This document shows positions 1 through 62,800 of a stretch of 64,000 bases of DNA, in pieces; the stretch's first letter is position 1; every line of letters starts with the position of its first letter. A model generated the notes under the pieces. That model saw only the letters and a program-made list of their open reading frames with translations. It did no database searches and was not told the DNA's origin. Position numbers and translations under genes: made by a program. Origin of the DNA: Aplysia californica (Eukaryota); NCBI RefSeq assembly GCF_000002075.1, contig NW_004798006.1:254994-318993 (forward strand), given 5' to 3'.

Positions 1-2375
1 GGTCAAAAAAAGTTAAATCAAAGAAATAGGTTTTTGGGGTCCGATGGGCAATTTGTTAAAAATAATTTTCTTTTTTTGGCTCAACACCTTTTACATCCAA
101 TTAAAAACACTTTTCCGAGTGGATTTTACTGAAAAATATTGATTAAAGGAACAAAAAATATCGATTTTCAGTTTCCAAAGACTCTCAAGCTATGGAAATT
201 ACCAATCTTTCTCACTAATTTTACCTCTGGAACCAGGCAATCCAGACCTCCTTCAACCGTATATATTTCGACTTCTATTCAAAATAGATGGATACATTTT
301 TTTTTTCATCAAAAGTAAGGCAAATAAACGGGCTTTAAGATGATATCTATAACCCCATATGCCCAAAAATAGACAGGCGCCTGATTCCACCGTGTGGTGA
401 CACATATATGTATAACACGGATAGCTCCAATTCATCAGGATTGGCCTCGGAAGTTGGATTTTTTTTTTTACAGTAGAGGGTTTTACGGCACTCGCAACTG
501 CATAAGGTCATATGAGCGCCAAGGGGTGGGTGTCAACAGACAAGTCTTTACAGGGAATCAGACTTAGACTGCTCACCTCTCTAGNNNNNNNNNNNNNNNN
601 NNNNNNNNNNNNNNNNNNNNNNNNNNNNNNNNNNNNNNNNNNNNNNNNNNNNNNNNNNNNNNNNNNNNNNNNNNNNNNNNNNNNNNNNNNNNNNNNNNNN
701 NNNNNNNNNNNNNNNNNNNNNNNNNNNNNNNNNNNNNNNNNNNNNNNNNNNNNNNNNNNNNNNNNNNNNNNNNNNNNNNNNNNNNNNNNNNNNNNNNNNN
801 NNNNNNNNNNNNNNNNNNNNNNNNNNNNNNNNNNNNNNNNNNNNNNNNNNNNNNNNNNNNNNNNNNNNNNNNNNNNNNNNNNNNNNNNNNNNNNNNNNNN
901 NNNNNNNNNNNNNNNNNNNNNNNNNNNNNNNNNNNNNNNNNNNNNNNNNNNNNNNNNNNNNNNNNNNNNNNNNNNNNNNNNNNNNNNNNNNNNNNNNNNN
1001 NNNNNNNNNNNNNNNNNNNNNNNNNNNNNNNNNNNNNNNNNNNNNNNNNNNNNNNNNNNNNNNNNNNNNNNNNNNNNNNNNNNNNNNNNNNNNNNNNNNN
1101 NNNNNNNNNNNNNNNNNNNNNNNNNNNNNNNNNNNNNNNNNNNNNNNNNNNNNNNNNNNNNNNNNNNNNNNNNNNNNNNNNNNNNNNNNNNNNNNNNNNN
1201 NNNNNNNNNNNNNNNNNNNNNNNNNNNNNNNNNNNNNNNNNNNNNNNNNNNNNNNNNNNNNNNNNNNNNNNNNNNNNNNNNNNNNNNNNNNNNNNNNNNN
1301 NNNNNNNNNNNNNNNNNNNNNNNNNNNNNNNNNNNNNNNNNNNNNNNNNNNNNNNNNNNNNNNNNNNNNNNNNNNNNNNNNNNNNNNNNNNNNNNNNNNN
1401 NNNNNNNNNNNNNNNNNNNNNNNNNNNNNNNNNNNNNNNNNNNCCTCCTCCCCACTCCATGTTCCGGCACCCAACAACAATGATCACAGCCACTGTTTTC
1501 TGTTACCCAATTACTGTTTGTTTTTGTTTGGTAGGTTGGTTTTGGTTTTGTTTTTTGGAGGGAGAGGGGGTGTGGTTTGTTGGAGTAAAGAGAAGCACAT
1601 CCACACAACAATGGTCATTTAGAGCTTTGGAAAGCATGTTTTAGTTTTAGTAAGAGTTTACAGCATTTGCAACACAATAAGGTCATATAAGCGCCGAAGA
1701 ATAGAGGTGTTACAAGAGAGTAACATACACAAAAAAGAAGGAGGAGAGATAAGGACAATAGAGTGGCGCCCTCCAACCACCCACAAAGACAGAAACAACA
1801 GAGGGAGAGAAAAGAAGTAGGACCTACCAGTGACACCCTCCAACCACCCACACAGACAGAAACAACGGAGGGAAAGTAAAAAAAGTGGCACCCTCCAACC
1901 ACCCGCATCAATTACTGTAAACTGTAAAACATCACTTAGCTACAGCACTAGGCCCCACTGTGACCGCCCTCCCCTCCTCCCCCCCCCACCCCCATGAGGT
2001 GAATCCTGATCGGCGCAACAGGTCAAGAAAAATACGAGAGGGGGGGGGGGGGTAATAACTTGACTTTTACTGATAAGACAATAACAAATGCTAGTTGGCA
2101 TGAAACCTGGAAGTCCTTAAACCAAAGATTCTAATCTTTGCTTAAACTGCAGTACGCTGACGACCATCAACACTCCCCTCCCTCCCCCTCACCCCAACCA
2201 AGAAAATAAAAATCCCCCAATCCCTTCATCCTTTCTCCTCTCTCTCCCCCAGTCCCGTATCTGATAAAGACAACAAGTGGAGACCAGGTCGAGGCCAAAC
2301 GACAGAGTGTCTGGCTAGGCCACTGGACTCAAATTGTTCGCTTTATTTAAACACAAGGGGGCTATCCCAAAAAAT

Positions 2376-2611
2376 GTGAGGCGTGCTGACAACAGGAGTT
2401 ACTTCTCAGATTTTAGCCCAATGGACATAGATACGTCAGATTTATTGGTTGAGTTTATACAATGTATGTGTATGAAATGACAAAAGAAATGTTAAACTTG
2501 AAGAAAATGGCATCCGCTAATGATCTACAAATTTGACCCCTGTGTTGATTTTTGTCCCATATCTCCATTCGTGGACTGCGAGAAGTAACTCATTTAGTCA
2601 GCATGCTTCAC
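2376..2611. mobile_element. Second Sola1-like MITE nested in a dispersed repeat (2357-2808; empty-site copy inverted at about 18760-18975)
   Basis: TIRs GTGAGGCGTGCTGAC...GAGTTACTTCTC / GAGAAGTAACTC...GTCAGCATGCTTCAC; AAAT on both sides, single AAAT in the empty copy. Confidence 0.8.
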
Positions 2612-2816
2612 AAATGCTGTTTTGGGGAAATTGAAGGTAAAGTTTGTGCCCCTTGTTCAGTTCCTTTAAAAGAAGATAGAGAGTCTTCTCTATAATCAAA
2701 CAAATCTACACACAACTGAAACCAAACTTCTCCTATAGGTAGGGCAATGCCCACTTTTGGTGTGGGTCAAGATTTCAGGAAACCCCCGAAATCTGGGTTA
2801 GCCCGCTGGTCCTTAA

Positions 2817-3263
2817 CCCTATCCGTACGCCCTGTGGTCATTTTGTACCCCCGGGGTTGTATTCTTCACATTTTAGAATACTTCTAGTACGAAGATCTCT
2901 TTGAAACTTTCAGTATTTCTCAAAAAAATCATTTGGACAGACTGCTATGCAAAGCGTACGGATTAGATTAACGGGTAAATTTCCTCTTTGGAAAGTGGTG
3001 GCACAGAGTTCCCCTCCCCACGTCGTATAGATACGATAGTAAAACACGACGTACAGATAAGGTTAAGTGGTGGCAGAGAGTTCCCCACGTCGTTTGGATA
3101 CGATAGTAAACCACGATGTACGGATAGGGTTAAGTGGTGGCACAGAGTTCCCCACGTCGTAAGGATACGATAGTAAAACACGACGTACGGATAGGGTTAA
3201 GTGGTGGCACAGAGTTCCCCACGTCGTATGGATACGATAGTAAAACACGACGTACGGAGAGGG
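2817..3263 (+). mobile_element. piggyBac-type MITE with the right terminus repeated four times (67-bp unit); second copy at 21894-22133
   Basis: TTAA|CCCTATCCGTACG ... CGTACGGATAGGG|TTAA. Confidence 0.88.
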
Positions 3264-3800
3264 TTAAAAGCGACCAATTGACACACCAACCCCCCCCCCC
3301 CCCCCCACACTCGTCTCACGCGCTGATCAACACTGGGATGTCGGGTGAATTTGACTGGGGGGGGGGGGGGGGGGGCGAAATGTGTAACAATATCGCCACC
3401 TCAGAATTACAAAGTTTTATCTGACATTTCTGGCCGTTTGGAGTTATAATATTGGCCATGGGGTCAGAAAGTAAATGTTCTATCTGCCTGCTCTATCAAA
3501 ATTGTAAGATTATTCTGAGTCGCTGTCAACATATTCAATTCAGAGAGTTGCATTTGAAAAACTTGAAATATTGTAAAAACCTAAACATGTTGTTCGTCAA
3601 ATTTCTCAAAAACTAGGTACTGAACAGATGAAACTTTGTCATTCAGAGGTAGCTATATTATGTCGCAACCTCAGCATTACAATTAGAAAGTTCTATCTGC
3701 TCAGTAGGGAATACCTAGTCTTGAGAAATTTGACTGTCCAAAATGTTGTGTTTTACAATATTTCAAGCTTAGTAAGAGTTTAAGTTTAGTTTTAGTAAGG

Positions 3801-4305
3801 AGGCTCTCGTGGCCTAGAGGTTAAGGTGTTGGCCTCTCATTCAAAGGTCCCGGGTTCGAATCCGGGTAGCGACCGAAAAATGTTCTCTAAAATTGTCTCC
3901 TTTCACCTCCTTTCCTGCTCTCTAGCAATATTCTGTCGTCTGTTTCGTCTCCTCTTTCTGCCCCCACCCCCTCACCTCCTTTGCCCCCTCCTCTGGGATC
4001 CTGACTCTTTCTGCAGCCTTTCTACTGCTACTCCTTGGCTCCTCCTTACTGCTGTCTTTCTGACACACCCCTGATCTTCCGGTAGGACAGATCTACACCT
4101 AACCTTCTCGGACAAGAGCGAAAAATCTCGGAGGGCCCGTGTGCAAGTTGCGCACGTTAAAGATCCCTTCGTGGTCTAAAATCGATAAGAGTAGGCTTCG
4201 GCCGCCACCCGGGCAAAATTCAAAATTTCCTACCAACTGAAAATATTAGGTGTGTCCCGCGTGCTCATATGACCTTATGCAGTTGCGAGCGCCGTAAAAC
4301 ACTTT
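3801..4305 (+). mobile_element. tRNA-derived SINE with Meta-like central domain and the family A/B 3' stem-loop
   Basis: A box TGGCCTAGAGG, B box GGTTCGAATCC, central CCCGTGTG...GCACGTTAAAGATCCC...ATCGATAAGAGTAGG, tail GCTCATATGACCTTATGCAGTTGCGAGCGCCGTAAAAC. The Meta assignment is from my recollection of the consensus. Confidence 0.8.
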
Positions 4306-4326
4306 ACAAAAACAAACCAAAAAAAA

Positions 4327-6291
4327 GTTTAGTAAGGTATTTACGGCACTTGCAACACAATAAGGTCATATAAGTGCCGAAGATTAGAGGTGTTACAAGA
4401 GAGTAACAAACGCAAAAAAAGAAGGAGGGGAGATAAGGACGATAGATGTTTGACAGGAAAGAAGAAGCAAACACACCAGAGCTCCCGTCAACCACCCACT
4501 AGTAAGAGATTTACGGCACTTGCAAAACAAATACGTCATAGAAGCGCTGAAGATTAGAGGCGTGACTGGAGAGAAACAAACAAAACAAAACAACAACAAA
4601 AAAAAGAAAAACGAAAAGGAGGAGAAGACATATTGGAGTTGTTGGCAGGTCTAGTGAAGAGACTATCATTATAACATTATTTTTTTTAGTAAGAGTTTTA
4701 CGGCACTTGCAACACAATAAGGCCATGTAAGTGCCGAAGATTAGAGGTGTTACAAGCGAGTGACAAACACAAAAGAAGAGGAGGAGGAGAAAAGAGGACG
4801 ATAGATGTTTGATAGGAAACAAGGAGAAAACCACACCAGAGCACCCGCCAACCACCCACTCTAGTGAAGAGACTGGTTCCCCTCAAATGATAACATCTCC
4901 CACAGCTGTTATCAAATGCAATAACTCTCCCCCCCCCCCCTGTCACAGGGAGGAGGTATGACATCAGCATTTTGTGACAGCATCATTAACACATTGAGGA
5001 TGAAACGTGACACATTATTACACGTCCGACCGGTGGCGCAGACAAAAAGCGAAACTTCAGCAGCGGCACTTTTCGAGACATTATACAGAACAAAAGAACA
5101 AGAATTTTAGTTTCATTAAGAGTTTTATGGAACTAGCAGCACAATTGGGTCATATATGCACAGAAGATTAGAGTTTTAGTATTTTTGTTTTAGTAGAGGT
5201 TTTGCAGCGCTTGCAACACAATTAGGTCATATAAGCATCGAATATTAGAGGTGTTACAAGAGAGTTACAAACACTAAAAGAAGAAGAGGAGATAGAGACA
5301 GTAGATGTTTGATAGGAAAGAAGAATCAGACCACACACCAGAGCACCCGCCAACCACCCACCATTATTATACGTCCAACAGACAGAAGACAAAAGGCGAA
5401 GCTTAGGCGGCACATTTTGAGACATCACAGAGAACGAAAGAACACGAGTTTGTATGGTAAGTTGGATTTAGTAAAGAGCTTTGCGCCACTTGCAATGATC
5501 GCAATTAGGTCATATAAGTGCCGAAGATTAGAGGTGTTACAAGAGAGTAACAAACACATTCAAAAAAGTAGAAGCAAGGACAGACAATATTATAAGTACT
5601 ATAGATGTTTGATAGGAAAAAAAGAGCAAAAACCGCACCTGAGCACCCTCCAACCACCCACTTGCACAGTTAAAAAAGTATCGGTACACAATATGCAGCT
5701 GATTGCCCTTTTTGGGTTTCAGAATTTTAGTTTAGTTTTAGTAGAGGTTTTATGGCGCTCGCAACTGCATAAGGTCATATGAGCGCCAGAATAGATTAGA
5801 GGTGTTACAAGAGATTAACAAACATAAAAAAGAAGAAGGGGAGATAAGGACGATAGATGTTTGATAGGAAAGAAGAAGCAAACCACACCACATCACCCTC
5901 CAACCACCCACTCAGATTTTTACAATCAGTAGTGAGGAATCTGTGAGAATACCAAAGTTATGCTTCGCTGTCGTCGTACGCCAAAAACATCGCATCATAC
6001 CGCCGTACTGAAGTTGTGGAAGGAACAGAATGCCTGTCCTCGGTGAGATCAAGTCGACATTTACACTGTAAGTTACAGACACCATGATGATGGTTGCAGC
6101 TGCCACTAAGGTTGAAGGTTTTTTTTAAGTTTTAGTAAAAGTTTTATGGCGCTCGTAACTGCATAAAGGTCATATGAGCGCCAGTAGATTAGAGCTGTTA
6201 CAAGAGAGTAACAAACATTAAAAAAAGAAGGTGAGATAAGGACGATAAATGTTTGATAGGAAAGAAGAAGCAAACCACACCAGAGCACCCG
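4327..6291 (-). mobile_element. Cluster of family A ~180-nt retroposed elements (about 4327-4499, 4500-4625, 4681-4859, 5180-5361, 5468-5661, 5726-5911, 6120-6291) in an APIP intron; further copies at 1638-1907 and 7825-8019
   Basis: Shared consensus GTGGGTGGTTGGCGGGTGCTCTGGTGTGG...CGGCACTTATATGACCTTATTGTGTTGCAAGTGCCGTAAAACTCTT(ACTAA)n on the minus strand; several copies have flanking direct repeats. Confidence 0.88.
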
Positions 6292-6710
6292 CTAATGTTG
6301 AAAGTGACCACAAAAAAACAACAACACCAACAACAAAACAACAAATTCGACGCCTGTCCTCTCATCCCCTCTTCCCACTTTTNNNNNNNNNNNNNNNNNN
6401 NNNNNNNNNNNNNNNNNNNNNNNNNNNNNNNNNNNNNNNNNNNNNNNNNNNNNNNNNNNNNNNNNNNNNNNNNNNNNNNNNNNNNNNNNNNNNNNNNNNN
6501 NNNNNNNNNNNNNNNNNNNNNNNNNNNNNNNNNNNNNNNNNNNNNNNNNNNNNNNNNNNNNNNNNNNNNNNNNNNNNNNNNNNNNNNNNNNNNNNNNNNN
6601 NNNNNNNNNNNNNNNNNNNNNNNNNNNNNNNNNNNNNNNNNNNNNNNNNNNNNNNNNNNNNNNNNNNNNNNNNNNNNNNNNNNNNNNNNNNNNNNNNNNN
6701 NNNNNNNNNN

Positions 6711-6755
6711 ATTCTCTCTTTCTGAACCCCAGAGGGTGCAATGTAGATTTCTTTG
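6711..6755 (-). CDS. APIP: APIP coding exon 3 (3' end lost in N gap)
   Basis: [15 protein letters not shown] after poly-T...aacag acceptor. Confidence 0.93.
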
Positions 6756-9700
6756 CTGTTAAAAAAAAAAGAAGAAAAATAGACAGAGTAAGACACTGGA
6801 AGAAAATGCCACAAAGTTGTTAGAAAATGTAAGGAATATGAATTTCTGGATAATAATAAAAATACCCTCAAACTTAAACTTGGTTGTTTAAAACAAAGAT
6901 TTTTACAAGGGAAGCCCAGCATATTGGATGAATGTATAAATTTAGTACAGGATATGAATTTATAGGTAATCATAATACATTGTACCCTCAAATCTAAACT
7001 TGACTGTTTTGTTTGGGTTTTTTTATTTTAAGGAAGAGTAGCATATTGGAAGAATGCCTAAATTTAGTACGGGAAATCAATTTTTGGGTAATAATAATAC
7101 ACAATGTACTAATACCCTCAAACCTAACCGTTGCTGTTTAAACAAAAAGAAAAAGAATTTAAAAAAGGAAGAGTTGCATATTGGATGAATGCATAAATTT
7201 AGTACGGGATATGAATTTATGGGTAATAATAATACGCTCAAACCTAACCTTTGCGGTAAAAAAAAAAAAGAATAAAAAAGGAAGAGAAGCATAGATCGCT
7301 ATTTGAAGAGTAGCATATTGGATGAATGCTTAAATTTAGTACAGAATATGAATATACGGGTAATAATAATACTCTAAAAGCTAAACTTTGCTGTAAGGGA
7401 AAAAAATGGCAGGATAACATATTATTGGATGGACATATAAATTTAGAACAGGACATGAAATTATGGGTAATAACACATGTTAGTATCATCAAACCGAAAC
7501 TTCGCTGTTTAAAAAAAAAAAAAAAAAAAAAAAAACCAACGCAGGGTTACATATTGGAATAACACACATAAATTTATCAGTAAATGTAAGGGATGTGAAT
7601 TTCTGGGTACGTATTTTTAAAAATACAGCGAACTTACATTTGTAGAGTTCATTGATAGCATAAATTCATAGTCCATTTTCTACGCTCACATCGACACAAT
7701 TTAGATCTTGATGGCAAAAAGAAAATATCCACTCCTGTTTCAAAGAAGTTAGCCCAGCATCGCATGTACTGCACTGAGCAGTAATCCTAAATCAGGTTTG
7801 TCAACTTTTAAAAAACCCAATCAGTTTTAGTTTGTTATTAAGAGTTTTACGGCACTTGCAACACAATTAGGTCATATGAAGTATAAGTACTGAAGATTAG
7901 CAAAGTTACCAAATAGATAGTAACATATAAATAAAAAAAGGAGGAGAGACAAGAGATGATAGATGGTTGATAGGAAAGAAAGAGCAAACCATAGCAGAGC
8001 ACCCCCCAACCTCCCACCCAATCAGTTTGTCTGAGTAAAGAGAAGCACATCGACACAATAATGATCGATTAGTTTAGGGAAACAGTAAAACAGACAGACA
8101 GAAACAACAGATGGAAAGTCAAGAACTCAAGAACTATATAGGACCTACCAGTGACACAATCCAAACAAAACAAAAAGAAACAGAAAAACACAAGCGCACA
8201 CACAAACATTGACAACAACGACACCAAAAAGAAACCCTTAGAGCAAGCTGGAAAAAATATTAAATTAAAAAACCAAAAAAAAAGTAAAAAGAAACAAAAA
8301 CAGAACCAATCAAAAAGCACAAGCAAAATAAAACCAAAAAGAACCTACCCCCCCCCCCCCAACCCCCCTGTACAAAATAAAAGGGTACTCTTTTCACCTA
8401 AAGCGAGGCAAATGAATACGCTTTTATTAAAGACAAGACCAATAACTCCTTTCATGTGGCCAAAAATTGAGGAACGTTTGATTTCAGCTTGTCGCTACAT
8501 ATAAATCAATCTTTACTATTATTTATCACTGTGATTATCATCATTATTTATCATCATTACTACTCACCCTTGCTTTATGCTGACGCCTCCACCAGTGCCC
8601 GTTACCCAGCCTAAGTCGTAGAACTGACGGCACAAAGAAGGGATCAGCTTCCTTGGGTGTTCCTGGGGAAGACCATCAAAATTATATAATGACTAGCTGG
8701 ACCCCCGTTCGATGAAAGGAATGATCGGTGCATTAACATCATCTGTAAGTCATTGGCCTACTATATTTACACTCTACTGGAAGGGAGCAATAAATCTTGA
8801 GAGATTTAAAAAATTAGAAGTTCTAGATATAGAGAGGTACAGATTGTTTCTCTATTCCGCTTTCATGGTTGTACACTCCAGAAGTTCAAAGGTGAAGAAT
8901 CAGTGCCGCACGGCTAGTGAACGGAAACCCCACTTGTTTACAAGGGTGTCTTAGAAGATGGATTTTCCCAAGATTTGATCTAAATCTAAACAAAAGTAAT
9001 GAAAAACAGAAAATTAAACTACAGTGACTTCAGACTCCTCAGTAAAACTGTGCACCCTTTAAATGAGTCTGAACCACCGTTAATTTGTTCAAATTCGAAA
9101 GTTGAGTGGTTCCGAAGTTTTAGGCCACCAAAGTGACGAACTTTCACAAATATTTATAAGACGTAGAGATTATTGCAGGAAGCTTTTACAGAAAGAAAAC
9201 TTTGGCATTTGTGGTATAGCGGTTACAATGCATTTTTCTGTTGCATGTAAAGGACCGTTGACAAATTATGTCAGCTCGGGGGGGAAAGGGGGGGGGGGCC
9301 TTCCTTACAAAGTTGACGTCAACCATGATGCTCTGAACGGTTGGGAAGAAAAGAAAAGAAAGGAAGAAAAAATATTATAGACCACATTTTTTGGGCTAAA
9401 ATTAACAGTTACATTGAACCAAATTGATTGATTTATTTTTACCAAGCAGACATGATACTCTTATCTATTTTTTTGCTTTGTTTATTTTCCAAGCTGCGAT
9501 ATCCAATCTATTTGTTTTAAAATTATTTTGATAAGTTAAAGTTGTTAATAAATAATTTGACAGTTCAGGTATTTCTGTATTGTATTTTTATAATAGTTTA
9601 TATTTTTTAATTTTAAAATAAAGATCAACGGTGTAAATATAAAATGCATCCTGTACAGGTTGTATACATGTGCACATGTACATTTTGATTGACGTCAGCT

Positions 9701-13395: not shown

Positions 13396-13432
<37 letters not shown>

Positions 13433-14323: not shown

Positions 14324-14465
14324 ATGGCAACTGCTATACACCGTTTCGGTGGCCGCCTCGGTCTTATGTGCAAATTAAAAAATATTTATAATCATTCACC
14401 TTCAAAAGACATTTTGGGCAGAGTAATTCAGACAAACCACATCCATTCAAATGCGCCTTTACTGG
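14324..14465 (+). CDS. PDHX: PDHX exon 1 (transit peptide)
   Basis: aagATGG Kozak; [13 protein letters not shown]...APLLG; GTAATG donor, phase 1 fits exon 2. Confidence 0.8.
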
Positions 14466-36976: not shown

Positions 36977-37066
36977 CACGACGACACAGTGAACAATCTG
37001 TACACAAAAGTCGTAACGTCTGCCACAGGACTTCACAGACTACAACAATTACAACAAACTGCAATT

Positions 37067-41744: not shown

Positions 41745-41774
41745 TCAGTGGCAGATTCTTTCAGTCATTTCTCT
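41745..41774 (-). CDS. MOB3: MOB3 exon 7 (to TGA)
   Basis: REMTERICH*. Confidence 0.92.
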   Translation of the reverse strand, partial: REMTERICH

Positions 41775-50700: not shown

Positions 50701-53700
50701 TTGGGCATGTGGAGTTATTGGTATCATCTTCAGAACTGTTCATCTGTTTTTTGCGTGGTAAAGGATGAAAAAAGAAATACCAATCTATCTTGAGTAGAAG
50801 TCGAGACATTTACAATTGAATGAGGAGGGGGTCGCCTGGTTTCAGATGTAAAATTAGCAGGAAAATGGCCGCCAAAATTGGTGACTTCCAAAGATTGAGA
50901 GTCCTAGGAAAAAGAAAATCTGCAATTTTTGTGCCTTTAATCAGCATGCCTCACTAAAATCAACACAAAAATGTGTTTTTAAATAAATATAACAAGGGTG
51001 TCGAGCCAAAGACCAAAATTAGAATAAAATTTCTAAACCGGCAGAAAAGTGACAGTTTCTTCGAGTTCAGTATTTTGACAAGCGCCTGATTTCACCACAA
51101 TGCCACACAAGATGCGATTTGTTCAGTGTGCAGTCTACATTCGATACATACCGTGAACAGCAACCCAGTCGTTGACATCCTCCCCTGGGGGCAACTTCAC
51201 CACTTCCTTCAGGTCAATTCCTGAATTCAACGACGCATTTGCTTGTTTGTGAAGATTGTATTTCAAGGTCCCACTTTCAAACCGCTTCTTCGGCCTGAAA
51301 GTCTGAGAAGAGAAGCAAGAATCCCGGGGTCATATTACCTCAGTATATCACTGGAACACGTGGATCATTTGAGCTGTATATATGGTTAAGCCCTTCACCT
51401 AACAGAATATACAAAAGATGCGAGTTCGATTCCTGAGTTCGGAGGCTTATTCCATTAAATGAGTATCTCACTTTTCTCTCGCAATTCTTGTAGCTCATTT
51501 AGCCCTAGCTGGACTCCATGGGCAAAGTCAAAGTAGCCTGCAGCTCGGTAAAATTACAGATTAGCTGACCACCTGCCGGGAATACTTTTATGGCCGGCTC
51601 TATTTCTCCAAACGATCAGGAAAATAAACTTGAACTTTATAAATAATAATAAAATAGATAGCATTTATACTGCGTATTTCTTTGATAACTGTAATTGTAC
51701 AACCTTTCACTGTTGTGCTGTCAATGATAATGTCCAATGTGTATCCTTTCTTGTACATAACAATGATGACATGTTCTGTGCACTGCGTCATTGTTACAAA
51801 GCTTGTCATTCATATTACCATTATGAATGGAGTTCATAGTGTACAAAGTCTTTGTTTACTTTACTAAACAAATGGAATTTAAAGTCCATAATTTGCCTTG
51901 CTGCTGCTTATCTGTTTTTGTCATCACTGTTACACATACAAGAAATACAGTGGTTGCCAAACCAATAGACCCATATCTCCAAAACCGTACATCTCCTTGC
52001 TCTGATACTCTAGGAATATGAGCACTAAATGTCAATCTGTGACTGACAGAAAAGAGAGTCAAATTGGTAAGAAACATTTTTTTGCACCACTGAGTCTCAA
52101 GAGAGTCTCACATTTTGGCAATTGCTCATAAAGGAGTCCTATACTTCACAGCGCTCAGACCGCCGGTACTCACAGGTTCATTGACCGGTCACGAGGGCGA
52201 ACCTGTCAAGACGCTTTTGTAACTTCTTTTTCTTTTTTTTTTTCCACAAGCGACAGCAGAGGACAATTTTTAATATTGATTTATTTTCAAGGCGACACAG
52301 CTTTCATAATGCACAACCTGCATGTTACAAATGTTGCGTTTTCTATCAGACTATTACCGGAAAATTTCTGGGCGGTAACGAAAGCAGATCTTGATTCTTC
52401 CCGATCGAGCCTCGGTGTCACACATACACTTCCGTCACAGCGGTTCAATTACGTTTCCCTTTTACTTTTAGGATTCATCAACCATACAGTCTAGATAGCT
52501 GCACATTACACAGGCCCTATCCTTTCCCGACTTACCGACCCATCACAAAATTCATGACTTTTTCCTGACCTCCCGACCTATCTCAAAATTCCTGACTTTT
52601 TCCCGATTTCCCGACCCTGTGGGGACCCTGTCTATTGTATTGAGACTAAAATGCAACAAAAACACAAGTTATCAAGCCCCCCGTTTAGTTTTCAAGTATC
52701 CTTCCCCCCCCCTTTCCGGTTCACATAAGCGGGGCCTCGTTTGTAGCGCCCGAGGCGACCGATGGCTGATGACGTCACTCAGTGGAAATTTCCCAGCAGC
52801 AGGGCATTCACCCAGTACGCGCAAATGGCAATGTCGCTTTTTCCCTTAGTTACTCCCACATTTTTAAAGATTACGCGAAAACCGCTAAACACGGAAGCTT
52901 GAAATTTTAAGGGAAAAAGAAAAATGGTGCACAACATATCAGTCAGTTTGACAAATCACAGCTCCGAAAAATCTTCAAAGCGCACCACTTTCGCAAGCGT
53001 TTTCGACTGCTTCTAGGATGGGTATGTTGTCAAACTGCATACTACAAGATTTACCTCTTTTCTGATTGGCAGCCAAGTTTCATTCATATCCATTCACGAG
53101 AAGCGGCGTGAGAGCGAGTTGAAGACAACAACCTTCGCGTTAGTGCGTCCCACGAAACACACCCCCTGCGGGGGCCAAAAATCGCCAGAACAAAACGCGC
53201 TCGGTGGGCATTGCCACTGTTGTAAATAGTAGGGCCTACGGCGATTTTGTAGTTTCGTTCGTTAAAGTCAAGCAGGGGGGTTTCAGGGGGGCTTGCCCCC
53301 CTGACCTAAAAAAAATACGGAGGTGTGGGGGGTTCAGGGGGGCATGCCCCCCCTGAGTTTTGTCCTAATTTGATGTTTTGCAGTTAGGTTGCATCCCTGC
53401 TCTTTGTGTAGCCTAATTCAAATAGTATTTGGTCTTCAAGACTTCTGGATTTCTTCTCTGGATGTAAACAAATGGATCGTGGACTTTAACTTTAACGAAC
53501 GGAACTACAAGATCACCGGCACCGGGCCTACTTGTACAATCTAATATTTAGACCACCCGTTGGATCTACGTTCTACAAAATATTGCCTTACCTGGCATTA
53601 ACGTAGATCTAGCTCTAGTCTAGATCTTAGATCTAGAATCTAGATCTAGATTAGATTCTAGATTTTTTGGGACTTTTTTTGTCTTAGTCTTAGCAAATTG

Positions 53701-53915
53701 CCCTTTTTTTCACTTGCCTTGTGGGTTCGCTTTCTAACTATAACCATCCGCAGACTAGTAGATCTAGATTCTAGACCTATGAAACTGAGATAATTTATCA
53801 ATTGTTTGTGTCAAAGGCACACTCCTTAATTTATTGACCATGTTCCTCTTGATATCGAAAAACCTACCTTATCTTTCGTAAAGAATTGCTCTAAGGCTTG
53901 TCTGGCAGCAGCCAT
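41745..53915 (-). CDS. MOB3: MOB kinase activator 3; complement(join(41745..41774,43008..43094,45470..45585,47814..47947,49308..49401,51152..51302,53868..53915)), 660 nt, 219 aa
   Basis: [16 protein letters not shown]|[12 protein letters not shown]...[14 protein letters not shown]|[15 protein letters not shown]...CPTMSGGPK|YEYHW...|GKPFPRN...[16 protein letters not shown]...|[14 protein letters not shown]...KELEPL|REMTERICH. These features are MOB3-type rather than MOB1-type. All introns are GT-AG and phases close. Confidence 0.96.
41788..41955. repeat. (GATAA/GACAA)n microsatellite forming the pyrimidine tract of the last MOB3 acceptor
   Basis: Pentamer array ending about 13 nt from the exon boundary. 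Confidence 0.9.
43008..43094 (-). CDS. MOB3: MOB3 exon 6
   Basis: [29 protein letters not shown]. Confidence 0.96.
45470..45585 (-). CDS. MOB3: MOB3 exon 5
   Basis: [38 protein letters not shown]. Confidence 0.96.
46797..47146 (+). mobile_element. CORE-like tRNA-SINE inserted into a MITE (46650-47260, same MITE family as 3392-3655)
   Basis: Near-identical to the 19500 copy; its flanks join to reconstitute the 3392-3655 repeat. Confidence 0.85.
47814..47947 (-). CDS. MOB3: MOB3 exon 4
   Basis: [44 protein letters not shown]. Confidence 0.96.
49308..49401 (-). CDS. MOB3: MOB3 exon 3
   Basis: [30 protein letters not shown]. Confidence 0.96.
49508..50122. mobile_element. Tc1/mariner-like MITE (TA|CAGTTGAACCT) interrupted by a family B element; related fragments near 10150, 41300, 55105, 59440
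   Basis: TA-CAGT(C/T)GAACCT termini recur at several sites. Confidence 0.55.
49577..49985 (+). mobile_element. Family B ~400-nt retroposed element (other copies about 462-584 -, 16917-17268 -, 23637-24020 +, 33817-34077 -, 58128-58463 -)
   Basis: Dispersed near-identical copies beginning CCCCCGGGGC and ending GGCGCTCATATGACCTTATGCAGTTGCGAGYGCCGTAAAACC. Confidence 0.88.
51152..51302 (-). CDS. MOB3: MOB3 exon 2
   Basis: [50 protein letters not shown]. Confidence 0.96.
53868..53915 (-). CDS. MOB3: MOB3 exon 1
   Basis: caaaATGG; [16 protein letters not shown]; GTAGGT donor. Confidence 0.9.
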
Positions 53916-55276
53916 TTTGTTTACTTCAGACTTCAGCTAGCAAGAACATTTCCTTCCTGTTTCGCTATAGCCAGGGCTCTAAGTTAAAGAAATTGGTCAA
54001 GTTTAATTGAACTTATGCTTTTATTGAAATAAAAACAATGGATATTTTAAAGCTTTTCATTTTTTTCTGGGGAGCTAGATCTAGGCTGCATTGTCTTATT
54101 CCAAATATGATTAAGAAATCCCTTTTATTTCAATTACAAAGTTAACAAAGAAAGGTATCCCAACTGGCAATGTTTCCTGAACCATTGGATTGAATTGCCC
54201 ATCCCATCGCCTTGAATATCCTAGATTGATTACCAACGAAGAATGTTATAAATAGCCTGAAATTAGCAGAGCAGAACTGGTTAAATTGAAATTGTCACTT
54301 TAAAAAAGGACCATGCTCTTTAACTGCCGCCCCTCCTCCTCTCCTTCCCTCTTTTCCTTCTGGCCAGCCTAGTGTAAGTAAGGTCTGAAATATCAAGGAA
54401 TATCGACGTCAGGGGACATAGTCATATATATTAAGTCTAAGTCATTTCGCTAGCCTAGCCTATATTTCTCATCCTGGTCTCTTCACAGTAACACATTTTG
54501 TTCAGATTCTCTAAGCAAATTATTCTAGGTCTACCACTACCTATTATGCATTCCATTTTTCCCAGTGACAACAAGGTGTTCAAGCCAAGGACTTTCACTT
54601 TCTAATTTCGATTCGAGGAGTGAGTAATTTTAGGATTGCAGTTAATTAAGTTAAACGGTTCCTAACGCTTCATGGTGACCGCCCCACGCTGGGTCAACAG
54701 AATCGCCCTATATGACATCTCTGATAAATTTTCCTTGTTTTGTCATGGATATCACTTCGAAAGTCAGTATGATTAACGATGTCCATAGATCTATATTATG
54801 CTTAACACGTATGCCTTCCCCAATTACTTCCGGGTCTTTTCTATGCTGTGTTGTTTCCCTTTGCATGTAATCTAGCCCAGCTTAGGTTATAAAGCTCTGG
54901 TTATGTCATTCGGGTGGTGATCCAAGGGGACGCCACTCTGTTTATTTAGTTTCATTTTGGCACAAAATGCGAAACAAGGCAATAGGCTAGAGCTGAGTAA
55001 GGCAGAACTTGTTAAAGTGATATTTTCCCGGGGTCGATGAGACTCACATACCGCAAGTGGTAAGTCGTAAGTGGTACATTGAATTTGAATGATTGACCTC
55101 AGATACAGTCGAACCTGTGTAAGATGGCCACCCATTGTCAAGGAAAAAAGTGGCCGTAATTTATTGTAAGACAGGTGGCCTTCTTGTCTAGGCAAGACTT
55201 CTTTCAGTCAGATCAAGACATTTATAACAAAATTTACAAAGGCCACCTCTATTCTCACATAGTGCAGGCGAGTCTT

Positions 55277-55720
55277 GTGGCTATTCTCACCCGGTGCGCG
55301 TTCACCAAATTTTGCGTTCACCCTAAACCACAGAATTGTACACTGTGATAACAGAAAAATTGTAGAATTCTGTGCCTCTGTGCCGTGAACAAACGTTCCA
55401 TTACAACTAGCCTACTATTACTACTAAAAGCGTACAATTTTGTCTGTGGGCAGTGGAGAGAAAGAGAGAGAGGAGTAGCGCGAGAATTTCCGGCAAAACA
55501 AAATGGCAACCCGCGTAGTTCGGCTCGATTCGAAAAGTTAAATAGCCGTAGCATCTTTGTAGACAACCAAATTAATTTACTTTTGTGTTTTAACATCATT
55601 TTTTAACTTTGTTTTGGTCAATTTGATCGTCCACACCGATAGACAGTATTCAGAAAGAGACAGAGAGAAGAGGGGAGGAGTTGATGTTTCGAGAACTTCC
55701 GGGCGGGTGAGAATAGCCAC
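55277..55720. mobile_element. MITE-like element with perfect 17-bp TIR
   Basis: GTGGCTATTCTCACCCG ... CGGGTGAGAATAGCCAC; TSD unclear. Confidence 0.6.
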
Positions 55721-58700
55721 TTTCATTTACAAAAGTCAAAAGTGAAAAACCATTCCTTTCTGAGGTCACCGCATTGTTATTGTTGTTGTTGCTTTCCCTG
55801 GATTTTTTTTTTCTTTCGCTGGATTGTACTTTACTGGACCACCCGTCTCGGCCCGTGATTACTACTACGCACGCCTAGCCTAACTGCGCACTCATAATCT
55901 AGTATTCTAGTTCTTCTACTTCTACAACTACTACGTGTGGACAAAAGGTAGCCACAGTTCCGCGGGCAACTTCGCGCACAGTGCAAGCCAGCTGCGAGGT
56001 GAGCGAGAGGTGGTGGTTGAGGGTGGGTAGATCTAGGGGAATTAACTTTGGTGGACCACCGTGTATCATACCAACAGTGAGGGCGGGGGGGTAAGCCCCG
56101 GTTACACGCAACGAGAAATTGTATCTGATTCGTCGTATGAGAGAACTGTCCATTTTATCGAACTGTGTTGTCTGTTTACACGTTCCAATCTATCGTCCAG
56201 TTTTCTTTCCATCGAGGAGATTCCTCGTCATGTAGCCTCCATGTCTCTTTGACTCTTTGCGACGACAGTGATTTGCCTGCACTCTATGTGAAGGTTTCGA
56301 GCTCTAGACCTAATGAATGAAAGGCGAACACTGTACCTCTAGATCATGAGAACCCTCCCCTGTACATTTTGATAAAAATAGCAGAACAGTGTCTTTAGAA
56401 GTTTAGAAAAGGATGGCCATACTGTAGGCCTACCGTATTGTGTTTAAACGTAGAAGCTTTGACTTTGGTTTGACTGCAGATGTACAACGCACCGAGTGAC
56501 CTTGATGCACAGCTGCACCCTTGACGATCAACTAAATAATAAAATTGCTAAAATATACTTAAATAACGCACCAAATCAGGTTCTCCGCGAGCAACTTTGC
56601 TTATTTTGAGACGCTGATTCCGAATATATATGAAATCAGTTTTTACCTCTATCTATGATAATTATTTTTAAATTTTTTAGCCCAGGGCTCCCCTTTACGC
56701 ACATTTGTGCGTATATTACCCCTTAAACCTGCAAATTACCCCCTTAAAGTTTTGGTGGTGCGTGAGCTTTACTCTTTAAAATTTCGTTTCGTGGGTTTGT
56801 ATACGCTTTAAAACTTAGGTAGTGTGCGTCAGGCAAGCATCACTTCCCCCCTTCTCTGCCCCGAAGTCGAGTCAATGATTTAACAACACACCCACACACA
56901 TGACACCGCAGTCACCTTTTGTCTGTGACTCTGTGTCAGAAGCAGAAGACCTAGAATCTACTTATCTGAGCTGCGCGCAGTTCCCGGAGACACCGGCTTG
57001 CTTGAGCACAGAAGCTCCACCCAGATCAGCCTCTCTGGCCCAGGTTCTGGTCGCTCGCATTATATTTGCCGGTGTCGTGCCTTGAGTTTACCCCTGCCGT
57101 GGGCCGTGAGATTACCCCCATCCTTCTTTAACACACTAGATCTAGTAAACATGAATTGTCCACCATTGAACGACTGGGATGGCTCTGAAGAATAATGAAT
57201 TAGTTTATTTTCCTAACCTGCCACTCATCCCGATGTATTCGGGATATCTAGGTTTTTCACCCCAAATTTCAAGTATCTCGATTTTCCCAATTTTGATCCC
57301 GTGTATCCCGATTATTTTTTTTGTTCCGTCTATTGTGCCGGATTTTTTGTAAAATATTATTCTGTGGGAAGCATTTTCCTAAATGTCTATGTCGAATTTA
57401 GTTGTTTTGTTGGATCTTTGCAAGCCCATGTTGTTTCAAGTACATGTATAATGGAAGTAATATTATATTGGTTTGGCATTCCGACTTGGGGCATTCTCAA
57501 GACCTAGGCCTTAAATCATTTTCGCTTTTATTTTTGTTTCAACTCAGAATTCTCCGATGGTGGCCTGATTGATAGCTGTTTAGTTTAAATTGCGACACAC
57601 AAATTATCAATACATGTATTATTCGTAGTTCTGCTATTACTTTCAAAACAAGCTTTATCCGAGTTCTGGTTAATCGGGCCCGTCATCAAGACCCTTCAGT
57701 AAAACTCTTTCAGTCGTGCTTTGGCACCACGTGACATGTCTCCCACCAAAGTGAGTTCCGCGTGTGTCGGGGACCGTTGACGGGGTCAATTAAGTTCAGG
57801 CACACCGGCTGAAGCGTCTTTCGGGACTTATCCGGGGGGAGGGGGGCGCATGTAAAATACCAAAACTAGGAGAGCTTGAATTGATACTTCAGGATTTTAA
57901 AAAAATAAAGGTAAAACACACACAGGCTTGCACACACACACTCACCTCCCCCCCTCCCAACACNNNNNNNNNNNNNNNNNNNNNNNNNNNNNNNNNNNNN
58001 NNNNNNNNNNNNNNNNNNNNNNNNNNNNNNNNNNNNNNNNNNNNNNNNNNNNNNNNNNNNNNNNNNNNNNNNNNNNNNNNNNNNNNNNNNNNNNNNNNNN
58101 NNNNNNNNNNNNNNNNNNNNNNNNNNNAAGGGGTGGATGTCAACAGAGAAGTCCTTACAGGGAATCAGACTTACTCTGCTCACCTCTCTGGCTTCAACAG
58201 CACAAAGTCTGCTTCGACTATCAAGGCACCCCGGAAATAGCGGGTCACAAGAGTGTGACAAACATACAAAAGAAGTAGAGGAAAATGATGATAGTAAGGA
58301 TTAGGAAAGAAAAAACAGCAGTTCCCTGTTGTAGTTCAGGCACAGTTGAGTATGACATTGTTACATCAGCCCATTTACAATCCTACTGAGCACTAGAACG
58401 AGAAATGTCCCCCCTTTGGGAATGGCCTAAAGACATTTCAGTCTGTGGCACCGCCCCGGGGTGATCCTGACTTTTAGATTTCATAGATTGGCAGGTCTGA
58501 TTTTCTTTGTGCATTACAGTTGGAATTGATCCCTTTTGTTTTGTCAACTTTATTTTATTTTTTATTGGCTCAACCACCACCACCCTTCCCCCCTCCAAAT
58601 GGACACAACTCTAATGGTAGTCAATATTACTCATTTATTTTCTTGCTGTTACAAAGAAACCTTAAGTTAATTAAAAAATTGTTAGCATTCAATCATAGTA

Positions 58701-61315
58701 ATGGTCACTCTGTGTGTGTCTGTGTGAATGTGCGTGCGCGCGAGTTAAATGTTTTCTTTCATGCAAAAATTCTTACTATTAAATAAGGAGATAATTGACT
58801 TTTACCCTCTAAGTTTCTAAAACAAGGGTTTAAATACCCCTTAAGACAAAAAACCAAAGGGTGAAGAAACCTCTTAAGTTGGTCTGAAAAGGGGAGCCCT
58901 GGCCCTGAGTTTAGTTCTGCACGGTGGCAAATTTTAAATCTACGTCACAGCGCGTCTCCCTCAAGTCTGACCATGATCGCACGGAAAATATCAAGCAGCG
59001 CTTGATTTCTCGATCGAGTCTCCAAACCATCGTTCAAACGTTCAAATTTTCATTATTTTGTACAATTTTGCGGTTACACCTAACGATTTATAATCGTATG
59101 ATCGCTATACCGTCCAGTTTTTGTACAGTTAAAATCGTTACGTGTAATAGGGCCTTTAGTCTTCTTCTCAGTTTACGTAGTGTACAGCATCAGATTCAGA
59201 ATCAATCTGTGTGGAAGAAGGGTGCTGCACAATCACAGACAACCGAACCGAACAGTTCTGCAAGTTGCAAAGAAAATAGTCTACTAATCCGAGTCGGCAG
59301 GCTTCCGTCATGCGATCGTGTTGTGTGTTAAAATATGGTGGCTGTGTTGGAGAGGTGCCCGTTTTACACTGTTAAATTATATAGAGAGAGAAAAAACGCA
59401 AGGGGGAAAATGGAAAGTGACCGTTTGTACAGGTGGCCATCATTGCAGGTTCCACTGCATTTCTGTCGTATTTTCAATATATCAGAAAAATATTCGGTAC
59501 AAGTGGATAGATCTAGTTGGAGAACGTTAGGACTACACTGATTATTCTCACCCGGGATACTGAGTCTCAAAAAAATTTTTACTGGTACTGAGGGTAAGTC
59601 TAAAGCCATCGTATTTCAGGTATATATGTAAATTTTTCATCAGGTTTCACAATTTTCATCAATTGCAATCTTTAAAAGTGTCTTATGTGCATAACTGTTG
59701 TCATCATACAGAATTGTACATTTTGACACAACATCTAGACAAGCTTTGAGCAATAAAATCCAATTACTACAGCTGAAATCGCTGGAAGGGGTTTCCTCCT
59801 GAAGACAAAGGAAGTAACATTTGTACGATGGAGTCATTACCGGAAAGGTACTTACTTTACGTCCATGAACGAAGCCCAAATTTGTCATCATCTTGATATA
59901 TGCACATAAGATGACCAATTAAAAGCGTACTTTTTAGACCGTGACTACTATTTTCGGCCTGGACTAGTAAACAAACTTACTTACAAAGTTCCTATCACCT
60001 CATTCGTGCATTGCCTTGGCATTTGAGCAAATGAAAAAGATAAAAAATGAAAATATAATTTCAATGTCATCAGTGTTATGCACGTCAGATTCTGGTGGTT
60101 GCCCGGGTGTAGGGACTGACTGGAATGCAAAATGCCGCCTGATGTGAAGTTTGAAAGTATATTCATGGAATAATTGGAAAGTAAAGGGATTCATCTTGTC
60201 AAAATCACTTTTTTTGTGTGTGACGTCAAAGCACCAAACTTTTACACCACTGACGTGGGAATTCCAAGATGTGCAGGGACAATTTTGTTTCAGTGAAGAG
60301 CGTTTCAAAGCGATTTAGGCTGTAGAAAATGCCAGACATCATAAATTCAGTAATTCCTTTTGTTTCATAAATGCCTAGAGCAATGTAAATTTGAATTAAA
60401 AAGAATGACTTCCTAAGATTGTTCAAATATTCTCTTCTTACGCTCATAACTATGATGACCAAAAATGTCTTCATAGTTATGCACAGAAGAAGTTTTTACT
60501 TTTATATTTAACAAAATTCTCAAGAAACTACTGTCCTCATACCTTAATATGGCAATTTTTAACTTAATATAGACAGACATTATACAAATTGATATCTCAA
60601 CAGTGGTGCTTCAAAAGAAGTGATTGGAAAAGAGAACTGTTTTGGTCAGGCTATCTGATGTGCATAACTATGATGACATGTTACATCAAATATCACAAAA
60701 TCAGGTGGGAATTTTCTTTTTCTTTTTTAAAGGTTTGATTCTGGCGTAAGAAGTAGTAGAGAAACTAACTTTAAACAATGGGGTTGTTCAAATTTTATCA
60801 CTAGTACTACTAGTAGTGTAGAGATTTCCTATCATCATAGTATGCACATCAGAATCCCAAAGTGACCATCTATCCTCTAAATTTCTTACAAAATATTTAT
60901 TTTGCTGCTGTAATTGCACTTATGAAAATAACACCAATTACGTCTACATGTATATTCATGGTATTGAAACGTAAATTAAGTAGTTTTTAATTTTTGACTT
61001 CATGACATGTCTAGGGGTACCAGGTTTTGGCTCAGGCTCCCCCATGGGTTTTTTTAGGTCAGGAGGACAAGCTTGCCCCTGAACCTCCCTTGCCTTTTTA
61101 AATACAAGTGAAATTTTGCTGCTCATTTTGTAGGCTAGATCTACTGAAAAACTTAAAACATTGATACCAATTATTTAAATCGGTATCGATATCCAGTACT
61201 TTGTGCTAGGCCTAGTGTGATTTTTTAGGCTAGTGCAGACCGGACCTCAATTTTGTACAGGCGTGCCTGCCCTGGACTGACTCATGACTCAGACTACCCC
61301 AGACTGTCCCTAAGA

Positions 61316-61498
61316 CTGTCCCCGTGGTTTTATGCACCCCGCATAATTAAGCAAAATTTGATCTTTTTTTTGCATAATTTCTGATTATTTTCCTTTATCA
61401 TTCTTTGTTAAAAATTAACAGAATCGCATAATTTCACTTTTTTGGGCTGTTTGCATAATTTCAGAATTTTTCTTGCATTTATAAAACGACGGGGACAG
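61316..61498 (+). mobile_element. ~180-bp MITE (second copy at about 24342-24521)
   Basis: TIRs TGTCCCCGTGGTTTTAT / ATAAAACGACGGGGACA; two highly similar copies. Confidence 0.75.
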
Positions 61499-61627
61499 CT
61501 AAGAGTGATTTACTTTCGACGTATATTTTCTGTTACAGCAATGCGGAAATATGGCGGTCTTATAATGAGGTTTGACTGTAAATATTGTCTGTTGAGTGTT
61601 TGAGTAAATTTATAATATCACATCAGA

Positions 61628-62800
61628 GTGGGTTGGCGGGTGCTGTGGTGTGGTTTGCTCCTTCTTTTCTACCAAACATCTATCATCCTTATAATCTCAC
61701 CTCCTTGTTTTTTGAGTTTGTTAATTGTAACACCTCTAATCTTCGTCGACACTTGTGTTGTTGCAAGCTCCGTAAAACTCTTTCTAAAAACAAAGAAAGA
61801 GTGGATAGTTATTTAATTTCTTTTCTTTCCTCTTCTAAATGACAGATGGGTAGGAGAAAGAGAAGAGCAGTCTGCTCCCAGAGACCTCCCCTGATTTTTC
61901 TGAACAGCCCAACAGACGAACCAGCTCCTCTCCAGTCCCCAGACATGGCGGTAGAGAATCCACTGACTGCCAAGACAGTTCCATTTGATGAAACCATCGC
62001 ATGGGTATTACTACATTTCTTCTTTTTTTTTTTATTATCAGGGGTGATGTCATTATCAGCTGTTATTTTCCCACTGTTATTTATGATAAATTTCCGTTGT
62101 TTCCACTGAAAAGAACAGCCTTTATTCTCACCATTTGGTGGGTGATCTGGTGTGGTTTGCTCCTTGTTTCCTACCAAACATCTTCTATCGTCCTGATCTC
62201 TCCTCCTTTTATGTGTTTGTTAGCTGGGCCCCCTTTCGATGAAAGGATTGATCGGTGCATTAACATCAACTGAAAGTCATTAGCCTATTATATTTACACT
62301 CTACTGGAATGGAGCAATAAATCTTGAGAGAAAAGTGACACATGTGTTTCCAAGTTGCCAAATATATTATAATAGATGTTATAGATCGATTGTCTACTCC
62401 GCTTTCGTGGTTGTACACTCCAGAGTTTCAAAGGTGTGCAATCAGTGTCGCACGGCAAGTGAATGGAAACCTCACTGACTTGTTTACAGTGGCGTCTTAG
62501 AAGACGGACTTTCCCAAGATTAGAACTCTGTGTGGACGAAACAAAGCATTTTGGAAAAATCGGGGAAAGCAGTTTGCGTGGATTTTTTAAAGTTAAGTCC
62601 TAGCCACATGGATGCTGTGAACACCTGCAAAGTTTCAAAGGTGTGGGTTAGGTAATAAGGGAGGAGTTTGTGCACAAGGCCTTCCAAGAATCCAAATCCA
62701 CTTTCATAAATAGATTATAAATATCTCGTAACGCCTCTAATCTTTGGCACTTATGACCTTATTGTATTGCAGGTGCTGTAAAACTCTTACTAACACAAAC
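61628..62800 (+). mobile_element. Family A copies in RHNO1 introns (61628-61790; 62140-62220 plus 62725-62800, probably one split copy)
   Basis: Same consensus on the plus strand. Confidence 0.8.
61846..62004 (+). CDS. RHNO1: RHINO (RAD9-HUS1-RAD1 interacting nuclear orphan)-like, first coding exon
   Basis: ATG directly after a polypyrimidine/AG acceptor. MGRRKRRAVCSQRPPLIFLNSP...TIAW resembles human MPPRKKRRQPSQKAPLLF...TITSW as I recall it. GT donor follows the W codon. Confidence 0.75.

Follow-up and report, generated by a model that had tools for sequence, protein, structure and literature searches.

Why should a short retroposon follow the direction of transcription of its host gene nearly every time it lies in an intron? 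The question is raised by a 64,000-nucleotide stretch of the Aplysia californica genome, here called the window (contig NW_004798006.1, in our numbering G000:C736:254994-318993, of an assembly of 927,310,431 bases in 4,332 contigs), in which a repeat of about 180 nucleotides (nt), termed family A, lies in several genes and had been described, in a sequence-only reading, as always having the sense orientation of its host. When the window is taken together with genes that were chosen independently of it, 69 family A matches containing the body of the element are sense and 2 are antisense (about 97% sense), and sense copies form the majority in 17 of 17 genes, for which the sign-test probability is 8e-6.

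The strands of the window genes were set by Pfam searches against the same genome. PDHX is on the plus strand, with a lipoyl-domain exon at 15767-15880 and catalytic-domain exons within 22761-27180, MOB3 is on the minus strand, with five exons within 43008-51236, and APIP is likewise on the minus strand, whose stronger exon match precedes the window by about 4 kb and whose weak one is at 8543-8644. A hidden Markov model (HMM) of family A, built from an alignment of 17 window copies, gave 51 matches in the window with nhmmer, and these form four strand blocks, of which 467-8019 and 42334-48403 are minus and 16247-34926 and 61628-62798 plus. All 27 body-containing matches in APIP, PDHX and MOB3 (9, 12 and 6, respectively) are sense, and the minus, plus and minus orientations first assigned in these three genes hold. 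The HMM matches on the opposite strand (4260+, 16922-, 33811-, 49742+/49911+ and 58236-) cover only part of the family A model and belong to a sister family, B', and to a third family, which both share the 3' stem-loop of family A, while B' also shares its central part. RHNO1 had been counted as a fourth concordant gene, but this gene call is unsupported, as the RHINO model yields only a sub-threshold match (E = 2.5, 61846-62010); ten further open reading frames (ORFs) of the window had no Pfam match. Eight runs of N interrupt the window. The PDHX exons and their 12 family A copies share one gap-free contig (13396-31449), and MOB3 spans two contigs, each with a minus-strand exon of its own. 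Among the APIP copies, only the one at 7826-8019 is on the same contig as the weak exon match, and the sense call of those in 1-584 and 1444-6382 depends on scaffold orientation. The stretch 27181-34926 lies past the last PDHX coding exon and holds no verified gene. In window order, the features are as follows (target-site duplication, TSD).

1638-1784, minus: family A copy, model 4-183 with an internal deletion (nhmmer E = 6.5e-34), sense to APIP by scaffold orientation.
3900-4315, plus: third family sharing the 3' stem-loop, antisense to APIP by scaffold orientation.
4327-4585, minus: full family A copy (4327-4500), its head abutting a 5'-truncated copy (4500-4585) (HMM).
4678-4861, minus: full family A copy with a 14-bp TSD (HMM, 184 bits).
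5105-5362, minus: family A 3' fragment (5105-5174), then a full copy (5181-5362) (HMM).
5462-5662, minus: full family A copy (HMM).
5729-5913, minus: full family A copy of the GGCGCTC/GAGCGCC stem subfamily (HMM, alignment).
6123-6295, minus: near-full family A copy beside the gap 6383-6710 (HMM).
7826-8019, minus: full family A copy on the contig of the weak APIP exon, adjoined by a copy of sister family A2 at about 8026 (HMM).
8543-8644, minus: APIP exon candidate, Aldolase_II model 3-36 (weak, E = 0.35).
15767-15880, plus: PDHX lipoyl-domain exon (PF00364, E = 1.7e-5).
16247-16333, plus: older family A fragment, with the next copy inserted into its tail region (HMM; TSD AAACTTGTA in its tail).
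16334-16515, plus: youngest family A copy, sense in PDHX (100% full-length identity to copies on two other contigs).
16928-17268, minus: B' copy (sister family of about 415 nt), antisense to PDHX.
19945-20436, plus: four family A copies or fragments, all sense (HMM).
21627-21813, plus: full family A copy (HMM).
22761-22904, plus: PDHX catalytic-domain exon (PF00198).
22928-23341, plus: three family A copies or fragments adjacent to each other, between exons of PDHX (HMM).
23362-23538, plus: PDHX catalytic-domain exon (Pfam).
23634-24013, plus: B' copy, sense to PDHX.
26950-27180, plus: last PDHX coding exon found, 2-oxoacid_dh model 151-231 (Pfam).
29509-29663, plus: two 5' fragments of family A, beyond the last coding exon of PDHX (HMM).
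33162-33559, plus: two family A fragments on a contig without verified exon (HMM).
34762-34926, plus: family A copy, model 34-182 (HMM).
42334-42851, minus: cluster of four fragments of family A, shortly downstream of the last coding exon of MOB3 (HMM).
43008-43100, minus: last MOB3 coding exon, Mob1_phocein model 140-170 (Pfam).
44014-45370, minus: five family A copies in one MOB3 intron (44014-44178, 44290-44459, 44660-44841, 45040-45178, 45188-45370) (HMM).
45461-45607, minus: MOB3 exon (Pfam).
47806-47970, 49304-49408 and 51060-51236, minus: further MOB3 exons (Pfam).
48228-48403, minus: full family A copy in a MOB3 intron (HMM).
49580-49990, plus: B' copy, antisense to MOB3.
61628-62798, plus: three family A copies or fragments (61628-61797, 62135-62222, 62715-62798) around an 87-aa ORF with the sub-threshold RHINO match (HMM).

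Does the co-orientation extend beyond this window? For an independent test, 25 myosin and kinesin genes were chosen by Pfam matches to their motor exons alone, blind to family A, and 42 stretches around or between exons, amounting to 145 kb of non-redundant sequence, were read in contig orientation, with myosin exons as a positive control for the strand calls (7:0). Taking all family A matches, these loci hold 61 sense and 2 antisense ones; restricted to body-containing matches, the count is 42 to 2, with copies in 14 of the 25 genes and a sense majority in each of the 14. Tabulated with the HMM outside the window, the orientation thus comes nowhere near 50:50, and the concern of the sequence-only reading that the bias might disappear once clusters are collapsed proved unfounded, as family A still stands at 45:2. 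The evidence had also been thought to reduce to four concordant gene domains; it consists instead of 17 genes, within which the copies are separate insertions.

One could argue that such uniform clusters arise by homing of new copies to older tails, by local duplication or by misoriented scaffolds, and that their agreement with gene direction is due to chance. A copy inserted into an older tail is indeed seen directly (16247-16515), abutting partial copies are common, and the window has its eight assembly gaps. Even so, we regard this explanation as highly improbable in view of the 17 sense-majority genes, 14 of them chosen blind. Scaffold misorientation is ruled out by the independent body-containing matches that lie in the same gap-free stretch as their anchoring exon, of which 37 are sense and 2 antisense. 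Local duplication is ruled out as well, as full-length copies are no closer to each other within genes (80.1% identity) than between genes (80.7%), and the nearest relative is found in the same gene for 2 of 33 copies, with a permutation mean of 3.2; copies of one gene are therefore independent insertions from common sources. A strand asymmetry of the target motif can be dismissed as a cause, since the sense strand of these genes holds slightly fewer AAACT-type motifs, which are complementary to the tail, than complements of them (ratios 0.64-0.86). If the primary cause were that inverted repeats are avoided inside a single pre-mRNA, each gene would be uniform but of random sign, yet all 17 are sense. 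The data thus support a bias that is tied to genes and not to local duplication. Homing, duplication or misorientation is refuted as sole cause; tail homing still contributes to local clustering, but it cannot explain why the cluster of every gene has the sense direction.

What kind of element is family A? Self-comparison of the window revealed a single family with about 30 strong copies, and the alignment of 17 of them gave a consensus of about 180 nt. Its start is G-rich and fixed (GTGGGTGGTTGG), its middle is rich in pyrimidines, and its 3' part comprises two hairpins and a tail built of ACTAAA-type repeats, (ACTAAA)n. Compensatory changes affect four base pairs of the distal hairpin (for example, A-U 10 versus G-C 8, and C-G 10 versus U-A 9), and the copy at 5729-5913 represents a subfamily with a GGCGCTC/GAGCGCC stem. 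The element was rightly called headless, as ARAGORN and Rfam show no relation of its head to tRNA, 5S or 7SL RNA. ARAGORN found no tRNA anywhere in the window, the sole Rfam tRNA match there (46797-46869) is the tRNA-like head of another family, and a permissive Rfam scan over the family A and B' copies returned nothing relevant. Family A is thus short and has variable TSDs, like a canonical short interspersed element (SINE), and lacks the RNA polymerase III-derived head with A and B boxes. ORFs overlap some of the copies. No long interspersed element (LINE) with the 3' end of family A was found in the genomic sequence examined; the anatomy fits copying by a LINE reverse transcriptase that would recognize the 3' stem-loop. 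Family A is an active non-autonomous retroposon without own promoter.

Other classes were considered and rejected. A Helitron or Helentron derivative is incompatible with the variable 7-14 bp TSDs and the tandem-repeat tail, and an introner with the up to five to eight copies per intronic stretch (e.g. 4327-6295 and 44014-45370). A Penelope-like or hammerhead-bearing retroelement was rejected because no hammerhead family of Rfam matches; partial copies that abut in tandem are present, but homing to tails accounts for them just as well. A snoRNA (small nucleolar RNA) retroposon was rejected because no snoRNA family reaches threshold.

The insertion sites of family A are informative with respect to its mechanism. 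Full-length copies are flanked by TSDs of 7-14 bp, often with one to three extra bases at the 5' junction, and the TSDs tend to start AAACT-like and can thereby pair with the tail. The TSDs and the repeat tail had been noticed from the beginning, as had their agreement with target-primed reverse transcription, and this mechanism is in keeping with TSDs that vary, with their microhomology to the tail and with a 3' stem-loop that covaries. The young copy at 16334-16515 is nested in the tail of the older fragment 16247-16333, and its TSD, AAACTTGTA, is that tail. This pair is direct evidence of homing to tails, which helps to explain the dense same-strand clusters. The family has been active recently: two other contigs hold copies that match the nested one at 100% along its full length, a third does so at 100% over 181 nt, and about 36 more copies share 97-99% identity. 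A genome search with this copy gave 3,012 candidates at first look, and two exact 17-mers of family A occur 23,063 and 27,910 times in the 927-Mb genome, evenly on both strands, whereas the reversed controls of both do not occur at all.

Relatives and neighbors of family A differ in whether they show the bias. A2 is about 150 nt long and has the GGGTGGTTGG head of family A, a homologous 3' hairpin loop on a different stem, and a (CAAA)n tail; 24 copies were found in the sequence examined, among them one in the window (about 8026, minus) and one at L009:2438-2584, and in 13 genes the family is 22 sense to 1 antisense. B', about 415 nt long and without detectable tRNA head, shares the pyrimidine-rich middle and the 3' stem-loop of family A and occurs in the window at 16928-17268, 23634-24013, 33815-34076, 49580-49990 and 58128-58461 in both orientations. 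Overall, B' stands at 11:2, and in independent genes at 9:0 sense. A, A2 and B' all end in short tandem repeats, and the third family carries the same 3' stem-loop. Outside this group, a miniature inverted-repeat transposable element (MITE) of about 430 bp with terminal inverted repeats (18114-18540, with further window copies at 37065, 38737, 50662 and 63479) is unbiased in genes (12:10), and a tRNA-derived SINE, about 400 nt long and ending in (ATT)n, stands at 6:3 (46797-47200 and five further sites). A Nin-type family that shares the tail of family A is represented by three copies in the sequence examined (2 sense, 1 antisense), too few for a control. The sequence-only reading had used its family B and a CORE-SINE as internal controls. 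The latter, probably our tRNA-derived SINE, is indeed not biased, but the former is B', which is mixed only inside the window; with its shared 3' module and its 9:0 outside, it cannot serve as an unbiased control. Reads of the MITE in stranded poly(A) RNA reach up to 16:1 on one strand (443 versus 27.5 at 18300-18499). Among other repeats of the window, PDHX introns hold minisatellite arrays at 25860-26302, 19169-19501, 22240-22727 and 24890-25246 (units of 148 bp, 47 bp, 53/31 bp and 41 bp).

The same families differ in strand composition. The sense strand is 62% pyrimidine in A, 62% in A2 and 56% in B', and per 100 nt it contains 1.8, 3.0 and 5.3 AG dinucleotides, respectively, as against 12.1, 11.0 and 10.0 on the antisense strand, whereas the MITE and the tRNA-derived SINE are symmetric. 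Among the families compared, the asymmetry is thus found only in the three biased ones. The 3' stem-loop, as a sign of the copying machinery, follows the bias in the same way, and machinery and composition are therefore confounded.

One way to read a pyrimidine-rich strand would be that sense copies are kept because they are useful, be it as pyrimidine tracts, as branch-point-like tails or as sources of intron-processed small RNA similar to snoRNA retroposons (snoRTs). The sense strand is indeed intron-like (pyrimidine-rich, AG-poor, with a branch-point-like tail), and snoRTs are often sense in introns (Weber 2006, PMC1687206). Like family A, snoRTs lack an own promoter and are flanked by TSDs, and they are expressed only when sense in a host intron. 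They differ by their snoRNA boxes, their tens of copies and their poly(A), whereas family A has no boxes, tens of thousands of copies and a tail of the stringent-LINE type. No Rfam family matches family A, snoRNAs included, the fold of the entire element is no better than that of shuffled sequence (z = -1.6), and tens of thousands of copies, several per intron and 75-100% identical to the consensus, do not look individually selected. We therefore consider a benefit of sense copies improbable.

The explanation that we tentatively prefer, although it falls somewhat short of being probable, is that orientation-dependent purifying selection on antisense copies sets the near-exclusive co-orientation. 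Family A would integrate by target-primed reverse transcription at A-rich sites that pair with its tail, including the tails of older copies, which would give local same-strand clusters, and the reverse transcriptase of one LINE would copy A, A2 and B' alike. As the element has no promoter of its own, source copies would exist only where they are read through in sense direction in expressed genes, and the lineage may hence have evolved a sense strand that is harmless in introns, with its 62% pyrimidine and 1.8 AG per 100 nt. An antisense copy would introduce purine-rich, AG-dense RNA (12 AG per 100 nt) into the pre-mRNA, which could disturb splicing or elongation and thereby lead to the removal of such copies. 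The antisense strand, which looks exon-like, also has (TTTAG)n and, in about 60% of copies, a donor-like site of GTAAG type. This removal could be efficient in a marine invertebrate with a large population, as in large populations even weak selection is effective. That composition tracks the bias, with asymmetric biased families and symmetric unbiased ones, supports this idea, and we infer that selection rather than integration sets the bias and what the cost of an antisense copy would be.

Several observations fit selection that is specific for introns. In a stranded poly(A) RNA run, family A reads come from both strands (1369 versus 1608 at window positions 16300-16499, reads genome-wide), and antisense copies must therefore be transcribed somewhere outside the introns tested; other repeats in the same stretch are up to 16:1 one-stranded, and a PDHX exon had zero depth in this run. 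To a lesser degree, intron-specific selection is also favored by the weaker bias in the 1.5-kb flanks of kinase genes with a one-exon kinase domain (7:4). Such kinase genes, near-identical and with an uninterrupted kinase domain, occur in tandem arrays (C46, C1790, C546, C231, C558, C1315, C174, C815 and others), an arrangement that suggests a large expansion of kinases specific to the lineage. On contig C1, 154 pattern copies of family A within the first 2.74 Mb form strand runs (runs test z = -4.1, among the matches listed); the proportion of same-strand pairs is 67% for distances under 1 kb, 86% for 1-3 kb, 75% for 3-10 kb and 65% for 10-30 kb, with a baseline of about 55% beyond. This strand mixing indicates many copies where orientation is unconstrained. 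The same contig has a stretch of about 450 kb (G000:C1:160000-615000) with nearly only minus family A matches (two exceptions), followed by a plus run of about 125 kb, and the minus run corresponds either to one gene of very large size or to several neighboring genes with a common orientation.

Other observations weigh against purging. The sequence-only reading had suggested that a comparison of young and old copies would separate selection from the insertion mechanism; such a comparison finds every identity class sense, and the 15 of 15 sense copies among those at least 90% identical to the consensus, and the age of both antisense copies (L067:1341-1522 and L010:2246-2418, with 85% and 76% identity to the consensus), speak against purging. 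Gene loci contain 90 pattern-bearing copies per Mb (95% confidence interval 42-152), compared with about 55 genome-wide and 29 in the kinase flanks, and although this excess is not significant, a density that is not lower in genes runs against simple purging. The promoter-side spacers 8645-15766 and 51237-61627 contain no family A copy, while the neighboring gene bodies contain about 0.8 per kb, and sense copies still occur 0.2-7.7 kb beyond the final coding exons of MOB3 and PDHX, where selection based on splicing should be weak. A crude splice-site scan revealed no excess of acceptor-like sites on antisense family A (0.08 versus 0.27 per copy) and solely one of donor-like sites (0.61 versus 0.10). 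Finally, a bias of about 35:1 far exceeds any selection-driven orientation bias known to us. Muscle-type myosin genes (C413, C596) are without family A, but as they are also without nearly all other repeats, nothing can be deduced from them about germ-line expression.

What alternative exists that accounts for these points? Integration could be coupled to host transcription, such that reverse transcription is primed or completed almost only on the template strand, giving an element on the coding strand. Possible routes are a ribonucleoprotein tethered to elongating RNA polymerase II or to nascent RNA, nicks in the template strand, or an orientation-specific abortion by repair. A LINE-driven superfamily would then be primed on the template strand of genes that are transcribed in the germ line, and its copies would be born sense inside transcription units, which we regard as a realistic possibility, though a less likely one than purging. 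A single mechanism would then account for a preference for transcription units as well as for the sense orientation, and the density together with the promoter-side and downstream distribution favors it. The extreme ratio in every identity class, including the 100%-identical copy, would be expected, and so would the bias of the three families that share the 3' stem-loop, while a SINE with a different tail and a DNA transposon are unbiased. The fraction of close pairs on C1 that is oriented, about 58%, is a plausible genic fraction at equal insertion density, whereas pure purging requires about 85% genic sequence. On the other hand, no LINE is known to sense the direction of transcription so strongly, the TSDs look like ordinary staggered endonuclease cuts, both strands are about equal in the stranded poly(A) RNA, inverted pairs at short distance are frequent on C1, the difference in density is without statistical significance, and the pyrimidine-rich sense strand is shared by the biased families as well. 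A precedent of opposite sign comes from L1, for which de novo insertions are 39:17, with an effect of transcription-coupled repair of about 2:1 at the insertion step (Servant et al. 2017, PMC5717806). Of the three causes first offered, we thus tentatively rank purging first, coupled insertion a close second and retention of sense copies a distant third.

How does family A compare with known systems? In stringent SINE/LINE pairs such as UnaSINE1/UnaL2, the reverse transcriptase recognizes a 3' stem-loop and a repeat tail, and family A is similar in its 3' hairpin with compensatory changes, its short repeat tail and the presence of this module in several non-autonomous families; to our knowledge, no gene-orientation bias has been described for such pairs. 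Introners of algae, fungi and tunicates are co-oriented with their host genes and each form a whole intron, whereas family A is a repeat-tailed retroposon without a 3' AG of its own that lies inside existing introns, with several copies in one intron. In molluscs, LP-SINEs and other SINE-like retroposons without tRNA head have been described, and the first about 70 nt of LP-SINEs are homologous to the 5' untranslated region of a LINE of the Nimb or RTE type (Matetovici et al. 2016, PMC4758252). These retroposons and family A are alike in being short and flanked by variable TSDs, in a 5' end that is not derived from a small RNA, in 3' short tandem repeats that consist of ACTAAA-type hexamers or follow such hexamers, and in modules of the body or tail that recur in other SINE families of the same genome; that paper mentions neither orientation nor introns. 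In a literature search, neither family A motif was found in any paper.

With respect to orientation, mammalian elements are the natural reference. Intronic L1, long terminal repeat (LTR) elements and Alu have an antisense bias, as had been stated for L1 and LTR elements in the sequence-only reading, and this bias is classically ascribed to selection (PMC10030826). Common to these elements and family A is an orientation that is non-random with respect to transcription and for which effects of selection and of the insertion step have both been proposed. Family A differs from L1 in being sense instead of antisense, and in a ratio of about 35:1 as opposed to roughly 2:1.

In well-studied genomes, intronic retroelements lean about twofold toward antisense, and an active family with tens of thousands of copies that is about 97% sense therefore has a bias of opposite sign to, and far stronger than, those of mammalian L1 and Alu, with purging as our tentatively preferred cause and coupled insertion as a somewhat less likely one. 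If the orientation is set at integration, target-primed reverse transcription would be steerable by transcription, which bears on target choice, and family A would be the first case of a retroelement that integrates according to the direction in which its host gene is transcribed. If it is set by selection, this would be the cleanest natural case of splicing or elongation constraints that shape a transposon landscape, and of a promoter-less element that evolved a strand invisible to host genes. Either way, the orientation of the element is a strong, annotation-free marker of the direction of transcription in this genome.

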